Shown here one piece after another: positions 4,446 through 53,235 of a stretch of 64,000 bases of DNA. Source of the DNA: Calcarisporiella thermophila CBS 279.70. Its lineage: Eukaryota > Fungi > Calcarisporiellomycota. A program made the position numbers and the translations under genes. Under the pieces are notes generated by a model. It made no database searches, was not told the DNA's origin, and worked only from the letters and a program-made list of their open reading frames with translations. Position 1 is the stretch's first letter. The number at the start of each line of letters is the position of its first letter. The DNA lies in contig NW_027192204.1 of the NCBI RefSeq assembly GCF_041956535.1, positions 272,523 through 336,522 of the forward strand, in the 5' to 3' direction.

Positions 4446-7400
4446 ATGGGAGTTCCTGCCCTCTTCAGGTAATCGGTGTTATGTGCAAGTTTTCCAATTA
4501 TTTTTTTAACATGATTGTATTTGTAGATGGCTCTCTGATAAATATGAGAAAATCGTAATCCCAGTTGTTGAAGAGGCTCCAAAGAAGGTCGATGATGTAG
4601 AAATACCCATTGATATATCGAAGCCAAATCCAAATGGGATGGAGTTCGATAATCTCTATCTCGATATGAATGGAATTATTCATCCATGTTGTCATCCTGA
4701 AGGAAAGGTTAGTATAATTAATTGAAAGTTATTTTGAAGATTTAATTCTTATGCTTATTAATTATATTAGCCTGCCCCGGAAACTGAAGATGATATGATG
4801 GTCGAGATCTTCAAATACATGGATAGAATTGTAAACATGATTCGTCCGCGAAAAGTCTTATATTTGGCAATTGGTAGCAGCATTCAATTTACTTTAATAA
4901 AGGTTGGCCTAATTATGCACAATAACTTATTAGATGGGGTTGCTCCACGAGCAAAAATGAATCAACAACGATCAAGACGATTTCGTGCTGCACAGGTAGC
5001 CAAAATCCAGATGGAAGAAGATGAAAAAATTCGAAAGCAAATTGAAGGTATGAATCTCTTTTATCTTACAAATTGCTTTTCTATTGTTAATCTACTCTAC
5101 TATATAGAAAGCGGTCATTTTATCGCGAAAAAAGAAAAGAAAGAATTTGATAGTAATTGCATCACTCCAGGTAATCTATTTCACGAATATCCTAAAGTTC
5201 TCACCTGATACTATAAATTTTTAATATAAAAAAACAGGAACACCATTTATGGCACACCTCGCTACTTCCCTTCGCTACCATGTCGCTTATAAATTAAATA
5301 CGGACCCCGGATGGAAAAATGTAAACTGCTTATTCTTCCTTTTTTCTAGTTCTTCAAAAATAATGTATCATTCTACAGTTAAAAGTTATTTTGTCTGACG
5401 CAAATGTACCTGGAGAAGGAGAGCATAAGATTATGAACTACATTCGGGCCCAGCGCACTTGTCCTGAGCATGACCCAAATACAAGCCATGTCATATATGG
5501 ATTGGTACTTACATCTTTTTAGTTACTTTGCTGATTCTTGATAACTCATATCACACTTGCCTCTAGGATGCAGATCTAATTATGTTAGCTCTTGCTACAC
5601 ATGAGCCGCATTTCAAAGTTTTACGTGAAGACGTCTTTTTTAAGGAGGGCAAAGTTGTGCATTGTAGGATTTGTGGACAAAAGGGGCATTATGCAGAAAA
5701 TTGTACTGGAGCAGCAAAAGAAAAAAATGGCGAATACGATGAAAAAGGGGAAGGCGATGTACAAAAGCCATTTATTTTCCTTGATGTTGGCATTCTGCGA
5801 GAGTATCTCGAAATCGAATTAAGTACCGAGCATCAACCTTTTCCATTCGATTTGGAGCGGGCGATTGATGACTGGGTTTTTCTTTGCTTTTTTGTGGGCA
5901 ATGACTTCCTCCCTCATTTACCATCTCTTGAAATTCGTGAAGGCGCAATTGACACCCTTATTACCTTATGGAAAAAATCGCTTCCATTAATGGGGGGGTA
6001 CATGACAAATAATGGAAATGTAAGTAAACTCTAATACAACTATCATAAACTTTTTTGCTAATATATCTAGTAGATTGATCTCAAAAAGGTACAGTACATT
6101 GTGCAGGAGCTTGGGTCCATGGAAGATGAGATTTTTATAAATCGAAAAGAGCGTATGTTATATATAGTTCAAGATACAAATATCCTATACACACCTTACT
6201 AAATTTTCATATCCTATTACTATAGGTGAAGAAAGGATTGAACGGGCGAATAAACGTCGCAAGCTGCGTGAAGAAGCTAATAATAACTATGTCACACTTG
6301 AGGCAACTGCAGATATCTCACAGACCTACAGAGTTACCAACTTTTCTGAAGCTTCAGCAGCTCCAGTGAAAGGTACTGGACATATCGGAGCGCTCTCTAA
6401 CCACGATGTTGTTACAAATCGAGCAGCACTTCGAATGGCGAATATGAATGCCGCTCAACTACTTAAGGCTGAACTAGCTACCTCAACCGAGACCAGTATT
6501 AATGAAACTCTTACTACAGATACGAAAGAAGAGAACACAAATATCGTTGCCGGTGTAAAACGGAAATCGGTCGAGCATGACCTTGAAAAACCCAGCGAAG
6601 AGGAAGATATAGAAGAGGACACTAAAGATGAGGAGGTTGAGGTTGAGGAAGTTGAGGAGGAAGCATTTGGAATTGTGAATAGCACGCCTATTAAGCCTCT
6701 CCCTAAGAATCCCGAACGTGTTCAGGATCAAGTGGACAATGTTCGCCTATGGGAACCAGGATTCAAAGAACGCTATTATCGCGATAAATTCGGTGTCGAA
6801 CTAAATGATTATGAATTTCGACGTAAAATTGTACATAGCTACGTTGAGGGTCTATGCTGGGTACTTAAATATTATTATCAGGGCTGTCCGTCTTGGAAAT
6901 GGTATTACGCTTACCATTATGCGCCATTTGCATCTGATTTTGTCGATATTGGCAATATCGAAATCAACTTCGAGTTGGGTGAACCTTTCCGCCCTCTGGA
7001 ACAACTTATGGGTGTGCTTCCTGCTGCAAGTCGAGACCACTTACCACCAGCATTCCATTCCCTCATGTGCGATCCGGAATCTGAGATAATCGATTTTTAT
7101 CCTGAAGATTTTAAACTTGATTTAAATGGGAAGAAATTCGATTGGCAAGCTGTAGTCATATTGCCATTTATTGAGGAACATCGTTTTTTGAAAGCTCTGG
7201 AGCAACAATATCCTAAACTTACCGATGAAGAGATAATGCGAAATACGCTAGGAAAAGAGATCCTGATATTCAGTGAAAACAATAAGCTCTATGACTCGCT
7301 CTCACTGCTCTACACTCGCCGTAATGATGACCAAAAAGTCAAGCTAAATCCTCATCACAGCAATCACATGTCCGGATATGCTTCTCGTGATCCAAATTGT

Positions 7401-29477: not shown

Positions 29478-29626
29478 CTCCAAAAAAATACATTTCTTCG
29501 TTGACTCGTGGGCCCTAAGGAATTCTAAGGATCCTGCAGACATAACTGTCCACTGTTTGCCATAGCTGATTAAAGGCCGGGTATTCCAGGTAAGGATATG
29601 CAATGGTTTCCACAGCGTTGGCTGTG
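29478..29626 (-). mobile_element. Diverged non-LTR retrotransposon (LINE) fragment, copy 0
   Basis: Aligns by eye to about 30296-30441 (e.g. ttgccatagctgattaaaggccgggtattccag vs ttgccatagctgatttatggccgggcattccag). Left boundary uncertain. Confidence 0.75.
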
Positions 29627-29644
29627 CTGGAATAAAAAAAAAAC

Positions 29645-29772
29645 TTTTTTTTTTGTTAGGAGAATCTCTATTAAAAAGTGTCCTTTTTCATTCTTAATAA
29701 AGAAAATTGATAGATATCAGAAAACAAGAAGTACATATAAGAAATGGTAGAGAGTGTGCATACCTTACCTAT
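29645..29772 (-). mobile_element. 5'-truncated LINE 3'-UTR + poly(A) tail, copy 1
   Basis: Poly-T run followed by gttaggagaatc..., near-identical to 29788-29906; flanked on both sides by CTGGAATAAAAAAAA. Confidence 0.8.
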
Positions 29773-29787
29773 CTGGAATAAAAAAAA

Positions 29788-30765
29788 TTTTTTTTTGTTA
29801 GGAGAATCTTTATTAAAAAGTATCTTTTTGTTAATAAAGTGACTTGGTAGTCATCAGTAACAAGAAATATATATAAGGAATGGTAGAGAGGGTGAATACC
29901 ATCCTATTTTTCAAGCAAGGAGGTATACGAGAGAGGAAAGTAAAAAAAAAATAAAATAAAATAAAAATTTGGAATACGGGTGGTAGAGTATTCGGCAAGG
30001 TCGTATTGGAGCTAAGTATTTTGGTTGAAGGATATTTCGTCTCTTTGAATTTGTATCCAACTTTCCTTACACCAAAGCTCTTGGAAACCTTCTTTCTTAT
30101 CCTTTATGGACGCTGACCACCATTTGGGTCTCACGATTTTTTGCATTTCGTGACCTAGCTGTTCAGCGAGCGCTATTTCGCTTGGTTGGGCGTTATCCAT
30201 TATTATCGATAATCTTGATCGATAAATGATCCAGATTGCTGCATCATGGACCGTTGACACTACTCCCCGTTGGTAGCCCATGTGTTTGTAGTCTGTTCCA
30301 AATAGTCTGTCTTCCTTGGTTGATTCGTGGGTTTTCACTCCAAGAATGCAGCAGAGGTAACTGTCTGCTGCTTGCCATAGCTGATTTATGGCCGGGCATT
30401 CCAGATAAGCATGAATAATAGTTTCCACTGCGCTGGTTGTGTACCGCCAGCAAATATTTGGTTCTCCTGTCCACTTACTAGTGATGGTATCTGTCACCGA
30501 TCTGTTTTTCAAGAGTCTCCATCTTAGTGCCCAATGATTGGGTTCACTTGACCGCTTTTTCCAGTACATCCAAGCTATCTCCCATCTGATGGAGTCGCTT
30601 GAGGTCTCTTTCCATTCCGGAATGATATTCTCCTCTTTGCTTGTCTTGTAGAGCCTCCTAATTTTTGTACGAATGTTTTAGATCTTTGTGCCAGCTAGCA
30701 CACATTTACCCAGCGGGAACGTGCATGGTCCTTCAATCTGTGGTATGCCCTGTAGCAGGGCATGT
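29788..30765 (-). mobile_element. 5'-truncated LINE (L1/Tx1-like) with C-terminal ORF2 zf-RVT-like region, AATAAA and poly(A), copy 2
   Basis: ORF 30012-30569 has ICWRY..VETIIHAYLECPAINQLW...AAIWIIYRSR (zf-RVT-type). Minus strand ends AATAAAgattctcctaacAAAAAAAAA; upstream frame has a stop. Confidence 0.85.
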
Positions 30766-31102
30766 AGGAATAAATATTTTTTTTTTCCTCTAAGGACGCG
30801 GGAACTTGCGTCCTGTGGTTTATTTAATATATATTACAAATCTGAGATGTGCTTTCGAACAAGCTTATTAAGTACTAGAAAAACATGGGATATAATTTAA
30901 AGAGTTCCGTGCTTGGAAATATCAGATTAGGTGTTCTTTGTTTCCTCGAAATCGAAGGCTTCTTGGCTGTCATCGATCCGGATTAGCGAGCTCTTTCCCC
31001 ATTTTTGCTTGAACCCTTCTTCGTCTTTTTTTTTAGATAGCTTCAATCCCGTTTTTTTTTTGATCCCTCATTGATTATATCCATCACGGCACATAACATT
31101 TC

Positions 31103-31424
31103 TGTTACGGGGGATTAGAGATTTCGTGGAGAAATATACGGAATAGTTAAAATAGGAGAATGATGAGGGACAATAAGTAAATGTGTATGGGTTTATATAA
31201 GTCAAAAAAAAAAGATTATACGTAAAAATAAGAAAAATAACGAAATCGAAAAGATATTAAGAATGTCGAAACCATTGTTGTACGTGTCGTGAAATTACGC
31301 TATATTCGTCATGATACCCGTGAATATTGCACTTGCACACTACGCTACACTCGTACTACGCTCTCAAATACCTTGTGACTGTCAAAGTGTCTTGCTCGTA
31401 TCAAAAACCGATTTTCTCGTAACA
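31103..31424. mobile_element. Solo LTR A (322 bp)
   Basis: Termini TGTTACG...CGTAACA (perfect 7-bp inverted repeat); TTTC on both sides. Confidence 0.75.
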
Positions 31425-31428
31425 TTTC

Positions 31429-31852
31429 TGTTACGTGGGTTTTGGGGTTTATCGTGAATATTGGTACGTAAAGAAAACAAATGAAAGATTTTCTTAAAAA
31501 AGAAAAAAAAAATAAGACAATAAATTTCAAGACTATTACTCAATATAAAAAAACTAATCCGCCTCCCCGTTCACTCACGCTTGAATCGCTTCTTATATAA
31601 CAAAATTAAACTAAATAGAACGAACCGATTAAACAAACTGGTTAAACGAACTGAATAGACAAACTGGTTAAACAACTAGTTTAACAAAACAGAACAAACT
31701 TGAATAAAATTTTCAAAGCGCTAGTAATTTGCCGAAAGGTTATAAAGGTAACAAAAACTAATTGTGCATAAAGTTAAAGAAGAAAAGAAGTTTTTTTTTT
31801 GGCTTGTAGTGGCGCAGTTATGACTGTACAAAATACCGATATTCCCGTAACA
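31429..31852. mobile_element. Solo LTR B (424 bp)
   Basis: Termini TGTTACG...CGTAACA; right end gtacaaaataccgatattcccgtaaca resembles the ends of A and E. Confidence 0.72.
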
Positions 31853-31856
31853 ATTT

Positions 31857-32099
31857 TGTTAGAATCTGCGTAGTACATGCGAGGATAGTTAAGATAATTA
31901 CTGGTTTATTAAACAAGAATACTATCTGGAACTTAGAATGTCTCCCTTTACTATAGTGGGAGTTCTGTTCAATATATACTAAAAGAATTACATTACAACG
32001 ATTACTTTATAATGCTCCGATAATGCTCCGAAATAGCAGGGCTTGAGGGATTACGTGGCTTGGTTGTCCTACTGCAGATATCTCGATACGATTCCAACA
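31857..32099 (-). mobile_element. Solo LTR C (243 bp)
   Basis: Termini TGTTAGAATC...GATTCCAACA (9/10 inverted); ATTT on both sides; minus strand has a TATA-like TATATA followed by AATAAA. Confidence 0.75.
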
Positions 32100-32103
32100 A
32101 TTT

Positions 32104-32351
32104 TGTCATAAACTAGAGCGATATAACTAGGGGATACTCGTGGAACATAGGTAAAACTATAGGTTTATTCAAGAACAAGGTGTGTATGTTGGAAGTTCTC
32201 ATTAGAGTGTTCCTTTTATACTATAAGATATAATAACTATATAACCTGTTAACTAATAAAGCTAATGAATACTGGTTTATAACTAGTTCCTAATTAATGT
32301 CGGAGCTTGAATATCGTTGGGATAGCTTGATATGTGACTCGAGTTATGACA
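32104..32351 (-). mobile_element. Solo LTR D (248 bp)
   Basis: Termini TGTCATAA...TTATGACA (perfect 8-bp inverted); ATTT on both sides; minus strand has TATAAAA then AATAAA. Confidence 0.75.
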
Positions 32352-32503
32352 ATTTTTTGTTACGGGCGAAAGGAGGTTTGTGTGGAGGGGTGTCCGGATC
32401 TTGATAAAAATAAAGAATTTATCTTTATAATTCAGGGAATTGGTGAGGACAACAAGACAAAATAGATGGGTTTAAATAGGGATGGGAAATCAAGAAAATG
32501 ACT

Positions 32504-32974
32504 NNNNNNNNNNNNNNNNNNNNNNNNNNNNNNNNNNNNNNNNNNNNNNNNNNNNNNNNNNNNNNNNNNNNNNNNNNNNNNNNNNNNNNNNNNNNNNNNN
32601 NNNNNNNNNNNNNNNNNNNNNNNNNNNNNNNNNNNNNNNNNNNNNNNNNNNNNNNNNNNNNNNNNNNNNNNNNNNNNNNNNNNNNNNNNNNNNNNNNNNN
32701 NNNNNNNNNNNNNNNNNNNNNNNNNNNNNNNNNNNNNNNNNNNNNNNNNNNNNNNNNNNNNNNNNNNNNNNNNNNNNNNNNNNNNNNNNNNNNNNNNNNN
32801 NNNNNNNNNNNNNNNNNNNNNNNNNNNNNNNNNNNNNNNNNNNNNNNNNNNNNNNNNNNNNNNNNNNNNNNNNNNNNNNNNNNNNNNNNNNNNNNNNNNN
32901 NNNNNNNNNNNNNNNNNNNNNNNNNNNNNNNNNNNNNNNNNNNNNNNNNNNNNNNNNNNNNNNNNNNNNNNNNN
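32504..32974. other. Assembly gap (471 N)
   Basis: Run of N characters. Confidence 1.
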
Positions 32975-33146
32975 GTCCTTGATCGATAGACTTTCAATCG
33001 ATATGCGTGTATCGTAGTTGTCGTGAATAGCATGTACGTGAAACCGATGTAATCTTTTGTACTTATCGTAAGGGCAATCTTATCAATAATCAAGACTCAG
33101 CTTCTGATCAAGTGGATAGCAGTCACAAACTAAGAGTAAGTGCTGA

Positions 33147-33221
33147 TGGGGGAAGTGGGATTCGAACCCACGCCGTTCTCGTCGGCATCCCAGGGATAGT
33201 CCACTACACTAACCCTCCCCC
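33147..33221 (-). ncRNA. tRNA-like element / internal Pol III promoter (A and B boxes) without a canonical anticodon arm
   Basis: Minus strand reads GGGGGAG-GGT-TAGTGTAGTGG-ACTATCCCTGGGATGCCGACGAGAACGGC-GTGGG-TTCGAAT-CCCAC-TTCCCCC-A. Acceptor-like stem, A box and perfect T arm/B box are present. Confidence 0.6.
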
Positions 33222-33307
33222 ATCTCACCTCCCGAGTATCTAAGTGACTGCTTATGTGACTTTCCGTACCAAAAGCCAATATCCTCGTAACATTTTTAAG
33301 AGTTCGA

Positions 33308-33381
33308 GTTTTCGTGGTGTAGTTGGTTATCACGTCTGTCTAACACACAGACGGTCTCCGGTTCGAATCCGGACGAAAACA
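33308..33381 (+). tRNA. tRNA-Val(AAC)
   Basis: GTTTTCG acceptor pairs with CGAAAAC; D arm GTG..CAC; anticodon arm TCTGT-CT-AAC-AC-ACAGA; T arm TCCGG-TTCGAAT-CCGGA; oligo-T terminator follows. Confidence 0.97.
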
Positions 33382-50551: not shown

Positions 50552-53235
50552 ATGTTAAAACTGATCGCCTCCCTCGGCAAGAAAGAAAAGGAAAGGCGAT
50601 TCTTTGAGCAGCCCCAGCAGACGCAACAGCAAGCGAGTGTGCATCGGTCAGCGTCTTCTGCGTCGAAACCAGAATCGACTGCCCCCTCTTTACGCAGCGC
50701 TTCTACACAGGAAAACGTTCAGTCCGTAGGACAAGGTCTTTTTCTTTCTGGAGGCAACCGTTATTACACTCTGAATTAACTCAACCCTCTCTTTGCTACC
50801 TTTTTTATTATTAATCTGTTCTGTGCCCAATCATAGTAACAACAAACCCTGCATCTGTACCCTATCCACAATTCAATCCATCACCAGCGCAGTTACATAC
50901 AATTCAACCGGAGAACATTCCACCATCAGCAGAGCAGAACCAACCACCACAGCAACCACAGCAAGCACCACAACCACAAAATCAAACGGCAACAGAGAAC
51001 AATAATATGGCAAATATTGGGCATGAATTTATGGATGGCGGCATGCATGGACTTGGCATGGGAAGAACCCCGCTTCTTCCGTCTATACCTCCCATGGGAC
51101 CGATGGGCCAGGTGCCTGGGGGAATGATGGGACCAAGTGGAGCGGGCGTGCCGGGAATGGGCATGCTAGGTCATTCTGGAGGCATCCCCCCTATGGGTGG
51201 CCCGGGTAGCATGATGGACCAGCCAGGAGTCGGGATGATGAGCGAAGCACATGGAGGAGTTGGTTCAATGGCTGGGATGGGGCAAGCCGGCCTGGGCCCT
51301 CTGGGAATGGGCCCCTCTCCTGGCATGCCACCCATGAATAACCTCGGGGGAATGGGAGTGATGGATGCTGGAGGCGGCCTCGGGTCGATGGGAGGCGCTG
51401 CGAGGATGTTTCCCATGGCACAAGGTGGAATGACGTCGATGGGAGACTCGGGTGGGATTCCTCCGATGGGCCAGGGGATCCCAGGGCCGAGCCAAGGGGG
51501 GATGTTCCCGCTAGGGGGTGCGAGGGGATTCCCGGGCATGGGCCAGAGCGGGATGGGCGCAATGAATCCAGGAGGAGGCATGCTAGGACAAGCCTCGGCG
51601 ATACCCCCAATGCACATGATGGGATATGGTCCATTGCCTGCGAACGAGCTCTTTGATCAGATGGGCTCCCCTTCCACACCGCGCGCTGGCTCTATGCCTC
51701 CTCCCCCTCCCCACCCTATGACACCCAAAATGATGCCGGCTGGGATGGGAGGACAGTTCCCACACCCTCCGCCTCACCTTCCACCGCTGCACCCAGTGCG
51801 ACCCCCTCTCTCCCGCACCAACAGCACTTCTAGTGCGCGAACCATGCCCGATCACCCAGGAGCACCCTTTGATCCCTTTATGAGAATGGAGGGGTCCCCG
51901 GGATTCGAGCCTCCGGATGGCATGTTCATGGGCGGGGGCTCTCCGCTGTTTAATGAACACATGAAACCGCATACCGTGCCCATGATGCCAATGCACCGCC
52001 GGCGGCCTCATCGCCTGCAGCGTAGTATGTCTCACCATGAGATTCCCCCGCCGCCACCGCACCTGTTTATGCCTCCACCACACCATGGTCCTTTCATGCC
52101 CGGTGGCGTCAGCGGCGGCGACGGCGAATTGGAAAATGCAGGAAAGGATATGCCTGCTACCTCGTCCCCTTTCTTCCCCCCTGGGTTTATGCCCCCTCCG
52201 CCCCCGATGCCTTTCCCACATCCATTCATGTATGGACCCCATCCCCCCTATTCGGGGATGCCGCGCCCGGAGCCGGATGAGAGCGAGGGGGGACGAGGAA
52301 AAGCCTCTTCGTTGCAGCGCGAGGGTTCGAGGAAAAGTTCAAGGATCGTGGACGATAAATCCGACCGAGGTAATTGGCCGGCAGGGCCTTTTCACGCTGA
52401 AATAAGTGACCCGGACATTGATTTTTCTATTTTTTTATATATTTTGCCCATCAATTCTGAATCTTATGGTGATGCAGCCACTGGAGACAAACGCTCTTCC
52501 ATGCCTCCCCTTCGCCCACGTGCCAGCTCCATGAGATACTCTACTGGCGGCCCGTCTCCCTCCTCGGCACCCATTACCTCCCAGCCAGCCTACTTCTCCC
52601 CTAGTCCCAACACGGGGCCCGACGCGGCCGGGGATGAGGTGCGCTCCGACGACGAGATCGAGGTGTTGCGGAAGCAGCTCAGCGATTTGCAGGTGGAGCG
52701 AGATGAGTTCTATAAACAAGAATCAGAACACCGCAAGCGGGAGCAGAAGATACTACAGAAGTTGGCGCGCGGGCAAGAGGAACTGCAGCGTGTGCTTTCC
52801 AAGCGGGGGCTACACTCGACAAGCGCCGGACGAGACCGAAGGGAAGACTACTACCCGCCCATACGAAGATCCCGATCCTTCCACCGCTACTACAACCCCC
52901 CGTCCCTCCGCGACTACTACCGGGATGAGTTGGACGACGACGAGGAGTTTTACCCGGGCGATTACTACTATGACAGGGACGTGTATGCGATGCCTTCCCC
53001 GTCCCAGCGGCAACGCTACGCGCGGGCCAGCAGGCAAGAGTCGAACGCGAGCTCGTCCGAGGCAGAGGAGAAGGAGCCCACTCCCAAAAATGGTGAAGAG
53101 GCGCTGAAAAGAGAGGGTGAGATGGCCGCTCGAAAGCAGAAGGAAGCCGACCCGGTGCAGCAAGACACTTCGGCCGCCGATGCAGCCAAAGATTATAGCA
53201 GGCAGCGGCATCGTCGTCGACAGAGTTGGTACTAA
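50552..53235 (+). CDS. Hypothetical low-complexity protein (Gln-rich, Met/Gly/Pro-rich, short coiled coil)
   Basis: 742-aa ORF with biased composition, joined through an intron (about 50735-50836) to an upstream exon MLKLIASLGKKEKERRFF; coiled coil EIEVLRKQLSDLQVERDEF. Confidence 0.75.

Follow-up and report, generated by a model that had tools for sequence, protein, structure and literature searches.

A pile of retroelement insertions, very probably laid down in order of time, upstream of a tRNA-Val gene in the fungus Calcarisporiella thermophila

We analyzed a 64,000-nucleotide stretch of the Calcarisporiella thermophila CBS 279.70 genome (assembly GCF_041956535.1, contig NW_027192204.1, positions 272,523 to 336,522 of the forward strand; hereafter the window), in which a row of short repeated units is packed against the 5′ side of a tRNA-Val(AAC) gene. 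An ORF of 742 residues in this window (51007-53235) is 95% identical to an uncharacterized protein of C. thermophila (phylum Calcarisporiellomycota), which points to that species or a close relative, whereas TPS1 has no match above 78%. The tRNA-Val gene is called by ARAGORN and matches the Rfam tRNA model RF00005 with 63.8 bits. Upstream of it, five units, A to E, each open with TGT and close with ACA when the sequence is read directly, and they are joined by tiny spacers that read, in order, TTTC (before A), TTTC, ATTT, ATTT, and ATTTTT, with TTTTT following E. The right end of E lies 15 bp from the 5′ end of the tRNA. A first-pass annotation, made from the letters of the window, had described five abutting TG..CA units, read as solo long terminal repeats (LTRs), together with spacers resembling target-site duplications (TSDs) and a last unit 15 bp from tRNA-Val; upon re-reading of the sequence, the coordinates of the units, the spacers, and the distance all proved exact. 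The borders of the units are also the borders of independent genomic repeats, so the stacked pattern is not a product of chance.

The number and kinship of the units required some revision (Table 1). Where the annotation had counted five or more units, A to E are indeed present, but the stack holds at least six LTR units, with a remnant of a sixth and oldest family, Z, lying outside A, and E is an LTR combined with a short interspersed element (SINE). Terminal TG..CA with short inverted ends is found in all of A to E and at the Z end, and the Z end abuts other LTR starts in two further loci, L028 (96% identity) and L015 (loci elsewhere in the genome carry L numbers throughout). The annotation had also assigned A, B, and E a related end and placed C and D in another group. 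A, B, and E do have about 36 nt in common at their right ends, and A and B have 31 nt in common around the left junction (families D3 and D4); C and D have only short blocks in common. Other genomic copies of A are 82 to 94% identical to it, with none closer than 94%. The hallmark of a solo LTR, namely a single LTR with a matching TSD and no internal sequence, is present in A, C, and D. The left and right TSDs of E agree, yet the middle of E falls in an assembly gap.

Table 1. Features of the retroelement pile upstream of tRNA-Val, in window coordinates
Feature	Position	Strand	Remarks
L1-type LINE (long interspersed element) fragment, 5′-truncated	30012-30737	-	5′ end towards tRNA; outermost layer of pile
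Non-LTR retroposon "T2", 258 bp	30774-31031	-	Poly-T (reverse poly-A) at left; directly outside Z
LTR Z end, sixth and oldest family	31034-31098		65-bp remnant, terminus CATAACA
Left TSD of A, TTTC	31099-31102		Equals TTTC at 31425-31428
Solo LTR A, 322 bp	31103-31424	-	TSD TTTC/TTTC; putative U3 (unique 3′ region) start at right, tRNA-proximal end
Solo LTR B, 424 bp	31429-31852	-	Unmatched flanks TTTC / ATTT
Solo LTR C, 243 bp	31857-32099		TSD ATTT/ATTT
Solo LTR D, 248 bp	32104-32351		TSD ATTT/ATTT, same target as C
LTR E, distal part	32358-32503	-	Left TSD TTTT inside spacer ATTTTT (32352-32357)
Assembly gap (N)	32504-32974		Expected content predicted by homology
tRNA-derived SINE, 246 of 328 bp visible	32975-33221	-	tRNA-like head 33144-33221
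LTR E, proximal 71 bp, putative U3 start	33222-33292	-	Ends CGTAACA on plus strand
Right TSD of E, TTTT	33293-33296		Equals last four bases of spacer 32352-32357
tRNA-Val(AAC)	33308-33381	+	Integration landmark; ARAGORN and Rfam RF00005

To place the stack in its genomic context, we searched the window's own 28.2-Mb genome for repeats, considering the best-scoring candidates only, with tRNA and repeat lists that are partial. Within this scope every unit is multicopy, with at least 66 genomic matches in the search with the window, at least 32 for B, and at least 48 for C and D together. Across 30 fetched loci, B, C, and D, single or stacked, end 9 to 18 bp upstream of tRNA genes, which include those for Gly, His, Pro, Asn, Val, Arg, Met, Lys, and Glu. 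B copies outside the window carry 4-bp TSDs and end 9 to 16 bp upstream of the tRNA gene; C copies (95–98% identity) end at the same 9 to 16 bp before tRNA-Gly, Asn, Glu, Arg, and Cys, and D copies (96–99% identity) end 10 to 12 bp before tRNA-Lys and Met. Approximately 27 of 28 copies of B, C, and D are oriented as in the window, the exception being one reversed D (L018). At loci without a tRNA, Rfam searches found no other RNA polymerase III (Pol III) gene beside the LTRs, and no LTR was found at the start of the 5S genes, of which only three intact copies are assembled.

An unbiased sample was drawn from 60 of the best 63 tRNA genes by Rfam tRNA-model score, each with 700 bp of upstream sequence, and a repeat was defined as sequence common to at least two other loci. 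A repeat end lies within 25 nt upstream in 24 of the 60 genes and at 9 to 16 nt in 21, and the proximal ends show modes at 10 to 11 and 14 to 16 nt. In 23 genes the sole repeat boundary is at 60 to 110 nt upstream, 12 have both kinds of boundary, and 13 have neither. All 14 proximal copies of B, C, D, and E in this sample are oriented as in the window. Insertions are concentrated within a few base pairs of one point upstream of many tRNA genes. The earlier suggestion that several LTR families share a tRNA-gene-targeting mechanism agrees with the 9- to 18-bp spacing at many such genes, and the distance from repeat end to tRNA start, measured over the 60 genes, supports a common target.

The near-fixed orientation of the LTRs suggests that the integrase makes an asymmetric contact at the target. 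One exception is found at L043 (G000:C2:1164972-1168181), where an LTR lies reversed, 25 bp before a tRNA-like head. This 414-bp LTR (region 1954-2466 of the locus) follows a polypurine tract, and the tRNA-Gly-like sequence before which it stands has an encoded CCA end and runs on into a repeated element. The locus may represent a further SINE family, one whose head is likewise a target of LTR elements, in this case in the same orientation.

Full-length copies are flanked by 4-bp TSDs whose sequence varies (among them AGTC, AAGC, TTGT, TAAC, CATT, CTGT, ATAT, and TAAT), in the window at A, C, D, and E and elsewhere at most copies of B, C, and D. Whole stacks can have a single TSD, with AGTC at all four junctions of L004 and TAAC at all three junctions of L021, so one element after another was inserted at a cut across the identical 4 bp. 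Within the window, ATTT served as the target of both C and D, whereas that of E, TTTT, is two bases nearer the tRNA, which explains the 6-nt spacer. Stack junctions all take the form ACA-4 bp-TGT, as might arise if the elements targeted each other's ends, with tRNA proximity secondary and the stack order not fixed; the TSDs alone permit either order of D and E. We nonetheless find this very improbable, because single LTRs with no LTR neighbor are present at the same 9 to 16 bp from the tRNA (L003, L005, L010, L025, and L029) and because SINEs displaced from their usual distance (L018, L021, and L068, described below) indicate that LTRs now distal were once proximal.

The coding capacity of the genome points to the type of element involved. 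There are 21 integrase-core matches, and all eight of the open reading frames (ORFs) scanned contain Ty3/gypsy domains. In the integrase ORFs that span both parts, reverse transcriptase-ribonuclease H (RT-RH) precedes integrase (IN), and the two whole polyproteins (the L053 ORF pair and L055) have the order gag-protease (PR)-RT-RH-IN. The L053 RT-RH region matches Ty3 with an E value of 9e-93, and the L053 integrase matches the Ty3 intasome chain. The L053 integrase ORF contains only the zinc-binding and core domains, with no chromodomain match; another gypsy family of this genome (L040) has a chromodomain.

The link between coding region and LTR is made by the polypurine tract. In L053 an LTR start comes immediately after the tract AAGGGGGAGA, and the tRNA-proximal ends of E, A, and B, once reverse-complemented, align with this LTR start. 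Likewise, the LTR start that follows the polypurine tract in L038 is the reverse complement of a stretch in L104 whose end lies 9 bp ahead of tRNA-Lys. Links of this kind to a polypurine tract or internal region are seen for the E-type LTR (L053) and for LTR families G and H. Judged from these alignments, at least A, B, and E would have their U3 start beside the tRNA and would point away from it, which reverses the orientation given in the first-pass annotation, at the least for LTRs of the A/B/E type and for a further family (L053 and L038).

We weighed an origin of the units as miniature inverted-repeat transposable elements or other DNA transposons with short terminal inverted repeats. Their termini are indeed 7-bp inverted repeats, TGTTACG/CGTAACA, and the assembly contains no full-length retroelement of B, C, or D. 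Such an origin is exceedingly unlikely, given that the A/B/E-type end is an LTR start directly after the polypurine tract of a gag-pol element and that the variable 4-bp TSD fits retroviral-type integrases; to our knowledge, no common DNA transposon superfamily makes a 4-bp TSD of variable sequence. LTR families known only in solo form beside tRNA genes also have a precedent in Yarrowia, as described in the cited part of that work (PMC5014426).

Returning to the LTR retrotransposon reading, B, C, and D are known in this genome solely as solo LTRs. Their LTRs are absent within 1.5 kb of all 21 integrase loci, and where internal regions are assembled, the LTRs belonging to them coincide with runs of N (L052 and L053). 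With no internal region or polypurine tract for B, C, and D, their retrotransposon origin rests on the hallmarks of LTRs and, for B, also on end homology. Of the full-length elements that the annotation had hoped to find by a genome-wide search, none is assembled for B, C, or D. The 4290-bp unplaced contig L055 (G000:C65) consists over its whole length of LTR-free sequence with one uninterrupted 1423-residue gag-pol ORF (Ty3 capsid, PR, RT, RH, and IN) and is a candidate internal region of a solo-only LTR family. In L053 (G000:C9:524200-534100), a Ty3/gypsy element with an intact-looking gag-pol stands between N runs. On its left side it carries part of its own 3′ LTR in inverted form, and a 145-bp segment recurs at the two ends (803-947 and 6640-6784) with 100% identity and opposite orientation. 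The inverted duplication may be a misassembly or a real inverted rearrangement.

The unit nearest the tRNA, E, is an LTR split by a 328-bp SINE rather than one unit, and the assembly gap lies inside this composite. The composite of E LTR and SINE is ungapped at three other loci (L018, L017, and L007), and the flanks of the gap correspond to L018 positions 1-128 and 427-745, with order and orientation preserved, so the two flanks are most likely continuous parts of one composite, with about 280 bp missing instead of the estimated 471 N. By the same homology, the gap should contain some 185 bp of the middle of LTR E and about 90 bp of the SINE tail; the scaffold gap estimate is modest, which argues against a hidden 5-kb internal region. 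The distal part of E is 81% identical to L018 positions 1-128 and 80 to 93% identical to other E copies, and the proximal 71 bp are 98% identical to L075.

The inserted element is recognizable as a tRNA-derived SINE mobilized by a LINE from its tRNA-like head, its poly-A tail, and its duplications of 16 to 18 bp, which were read at two copies (L018 and L053). It has more than 20 dispersed copies. The head is recognized weakly, as an Rfam clan hit, and ARAGORN calls copies of it tRNA of unknown type. In 15 loci the SINE head lies 78 to 89 bp upstream of the tRNA start, always in the opposite orientation; in the window the distance is 86 bp. The sequence that it interrupts varies and includes B (L015), C (L013, L085, and L100), D (several contigs), A (L021), and E-type LTRs, as well as non-repeated sequence (L056, L088, and L108), with further copies at L017, L018, and L058. 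Copies of the SINE that are truncated at the 5′ end stop at the same place, which indicates that the target site is a fixed feature.

For E alone, the tRNA-like segment could instead be integral to the LTR and supply its own Pol III promoter, in the manner of Cassandra. The SINE occupies the same position in the E-type LTR in the window, L017, and L018, and L007 has the same junction between LTR and SINE tail, such that the composite could have spread as a unit. This explanation is unlikely in view of the occurrence of the same 328-bp unit within B, C, and D LTRs and within non-repeated sequence, each time some 85 bp from the tRNA, the poly-A tail and 16-bp overlap at the SINE insertion site in C (L013), and the arrangement in L053, where the SINE lies at a different LTR position and in a different orientation, with an empty copy of that site next to it. 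A later insertion of the SINE into E is therefore more likely, and the idea of an LTR with its own tRNA promoter was set aside.

Displaced copies of this SINE allow the order of insertion to be read. At L018, L068, and L021, the SINE head lies 332, 401, and 579 bp from the tRNA, respectively, with one, one, and two LTRs between SINE and tRNA, and subtraction of these LTRs and their duplications leaves about 80 bp. The excess distance equals the intervening LTRs, from which it follows that these LTRs were added at the proximal site when the SINE was already in place. These data support the rule that the unit nearest the tRNA is the youngest. The displaced SINEs and the single-TSD stacks (L004 and L021) likewise uphold the proposal of the annotation that each new insertion pushes the older ones outward. 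Applied to the window, the rule would give the order Z, A, B, C, D, then E, then the SINE inside E.

Other stacks have different orders, namely A,D,B,E (L004), A,D,C (L021), and E,D (L018). A run of B then C does recur in L002, many N gaps surround the retroelements, and L053 contains the suspicious 145-bp perfect inverted duplication, all of which would suit a composite repeat copied by segmental duplication or an assembly artifact of repeats collapsed at the gap. We hold this to be very improbable, because the order of families varies among stacks (L004, L021, and L018), each unit has its own TSD, and copies differ by 1 to 17%, so they are not recent block copies.

Together, these observations make it very probable that retroelements aiming for the Pol III initiation complex of tRNA-Val inserted here one after another and left a pile ordered in time. 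According to this model, several LTR families of the Ty3/gypsy type would integrate through a 4-bp staggered cut at a nearly fixed point, with at least A, B, and E transcribed away from the tRNA and their U3 start facing it. By analogy with Ty3, the integrase may be positioned by TFIIIB or the transcription start. Each insertion would then collapse to a solo LTR through LTR-LTR recombination, which is the standard route to solo LTRs, and the next insertion would hit the same point and shift the older LTRs outward. After the arrival of E, a LINE-mobilized SINE would have inserted about 85 bp upstream of the tRNA, that is, inside E. The model presumes that every unit was once a full element and that A to D arrived in the exact order in which they stand in the window.

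Several observations weigh against this reading. The left flank of B in the window reads TTTC and the right flank ATTT, and a test of whether this copy is chimeric, made to explain the mismatch, gave no signal. Recombination between two successive B-family insertions could account for the flanks, which we offer only as a proposal; with unmatched flanks, the record kept by the stack is not lossless. The solo state of E is presumed across the assembly gap that takes up its middle. A genome search found no same-family pairs of B, C, or D at element distance around gag-pol, and no G-rich polypurine tract was found beside the proximal ends of B, C, and D (0 matches). A single full-length E-type element is available (L053), its 5′ side is rearranged or misassembled, and no primer-binding site was identified in it.

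The branch lengths belong with these points. Terminal branches of the window copies measure 0.0094 for B, 0.0074 for C, and 0.0048 for D, which is the predicted order, yet one to four substitutions underlie these lengths. At 0.0168, the branch of the SINE within E is longer and does not fit a simple gradient of age, and E is a poor fit as well, being without a close relative (≤93% over its distal part). As to the expectation in the annotation that divergence increases with distance from the tRNA, B, C, and D are separated by too few substitutions to carry weight, the SINE and E do not conform, and there is no clear rise. Its likening of the stack to a CRISPR spacer array holds as an analogy of layout only.

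Beyond the LTR pile, at 29478-31031 of the window, 5′-truncated L1-type LINE fragments (zf-RVT) and the T2 retroposon are stacked with their tails outward. The translation of the outermost LINE fragment matches zf-RVT (PF13966, E value 7e-07), and the fragment is 90% identical to L053:575-740. T2 is 88 to 93% identical to copies at L030, L082, L084, L014, L005, L060, and L106, which show variable 5′ truncation, and no target duplication was confirmed for it. The LINE and T2 pieces probably represent earlier layers that were inserted at the outer fixed distance, and their layout agrees with Z having held the proximal position before A to E arrived.

Two other loci involve 5S rRNA sequences. At L117 (G000:C31; 5S gene 280129-280247), a 5S rRNA gene is preceded, at a distance of 76 bp, by the end of a truncated 3′ piece of a LINE. 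The spacing equals the distance at tRNA genes when counted from the transcription start, so the outer distance may be general to Pol III genes and read from the transcription start of any of them. At L119 (G000:C5:1186735-1186848), a truncated 5S rRNA copy flanked by GAAGTTTT repeats lies upstream of a tRNA, with a SINE head on one side and the final 70 bp of a B LTR on the other, and looks like a 5S retropseudogene inserted at the outer site.

On balance, we lean toward a wider reading in which two independent rulers act on the Pol III complex upstream of most tRNA genes. One, at about 10 to 16 bp and in one orientation, would be used by at least seven distinct Ty3/gypsy LTR families, and the other, at about 80 to 100 bp, by an L1-type LINE, the tRNA-derived SINE, and other retroposons, such that the two together would leave a self-ordering stratigraphic record.

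Ty3-type targeting of Pol III genes is textbook safe-haven integration, and Ty3 makes a 5-bp TSD, in contrast to the 4 bp in this genome. In the cited sections of a 2018 review, the Pol III start used by Ty3 lies about 10 bp before the mature tRNA end, and Ty3/sigma of Saccharomyces cerevisiae integrates a few base pairs from that start, leaving an LTR end about 15 to 20 bp before the mature tRNA (PMC5911963), much as is observed here. The C. thermophila elements further resemble Ty3 in the dominance of solo LTRs, in an integrase without a chromodomain, and in the RT-RH match of L053. They differ in that almost all copies, about 27 of 28, have one orientation, while Ty3 is inserted in either direction (PMC5911963), in the presence of many distinct LTR families at one site, and in a host that is an early-diverging fungus and not an ascomycete yeast.

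Other tRNA gene-associated elements in the cited portions of the literature include Tyl3, Tyl6, and LTRyl7-9 of Yarrowia lipolytica, Tj1 of Schizosaccharomyces japonicus, and beta/Tca8 of Candida albicans (PMC5014426, PMC5911963). B, C, and D resemble LTRyl7-9, which the cited part of the Yarrowia study presents as families known only as solo LTRs (PMC5014426). A transposition assay for Tj1 has been carried out in S. pombe (covered in PMC5911963; original study, PMC4600332). All of these hosts are Ascomycota, and the cited portions describe no deep same-site stacks with shared TSDs. DGLT-A of Dictyostelium discoideum is likewise a Ty3/gypsy element that inserts 13 to 33 bp upstream of tRNA genes, a behavior of independent origin (PMC5006619, PMC5911963; cited sections), but it is amoebozoan and inserts in either orientation. 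The SINE/LINE layer has a counterpart in TRE5-A, an L1-type non-LTR element of D. discoideum that inserts at a defined position ahead of tRNA genes, in opposite transcriptional orientation, with 5S genes as further targets (PMC5911963). Binding of TFIIIB by an ORF product has been described for TRE5-A. TRE5-A inserts 44 to 54 bp upstream, as compared with about 80 to 100 bp here, where a tRNA-derived SINE and L1-type fragments are found in a fungal host. In Table 1 of the 2018 review, fungal tRNA-targeting LTR elements are listed only in Ascomycota and non-LTR elements only in dictyostelids (PMC5911963, the part cited). Our literature search, which was incomplete in coverage, found nothing on tRNA-targeted elements in early-diverging fungi or on Calcarisporiella retrotransposons.

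Ty3-type tRNA targeting is a known behavior, here in a fungal lineage for which we found no description, and the outer SINE/LINE distance may be the more original result. If the reading is correct, the outer ruler would be the first tRNA gene-targeted non-LTR system outside Amoebozoa, and the SINE would be the first shown to home to tRNA genes. Either the trait extends deep into the fungal tree or it represents another independent origin. The C. thermophila loci would also provide natural material for studying what fixes the orientation of integration, and same-site stacks that are cross-dated by a second element at a fixed distance would constitute a rare internal relative clock for bursts of retroelement activity.

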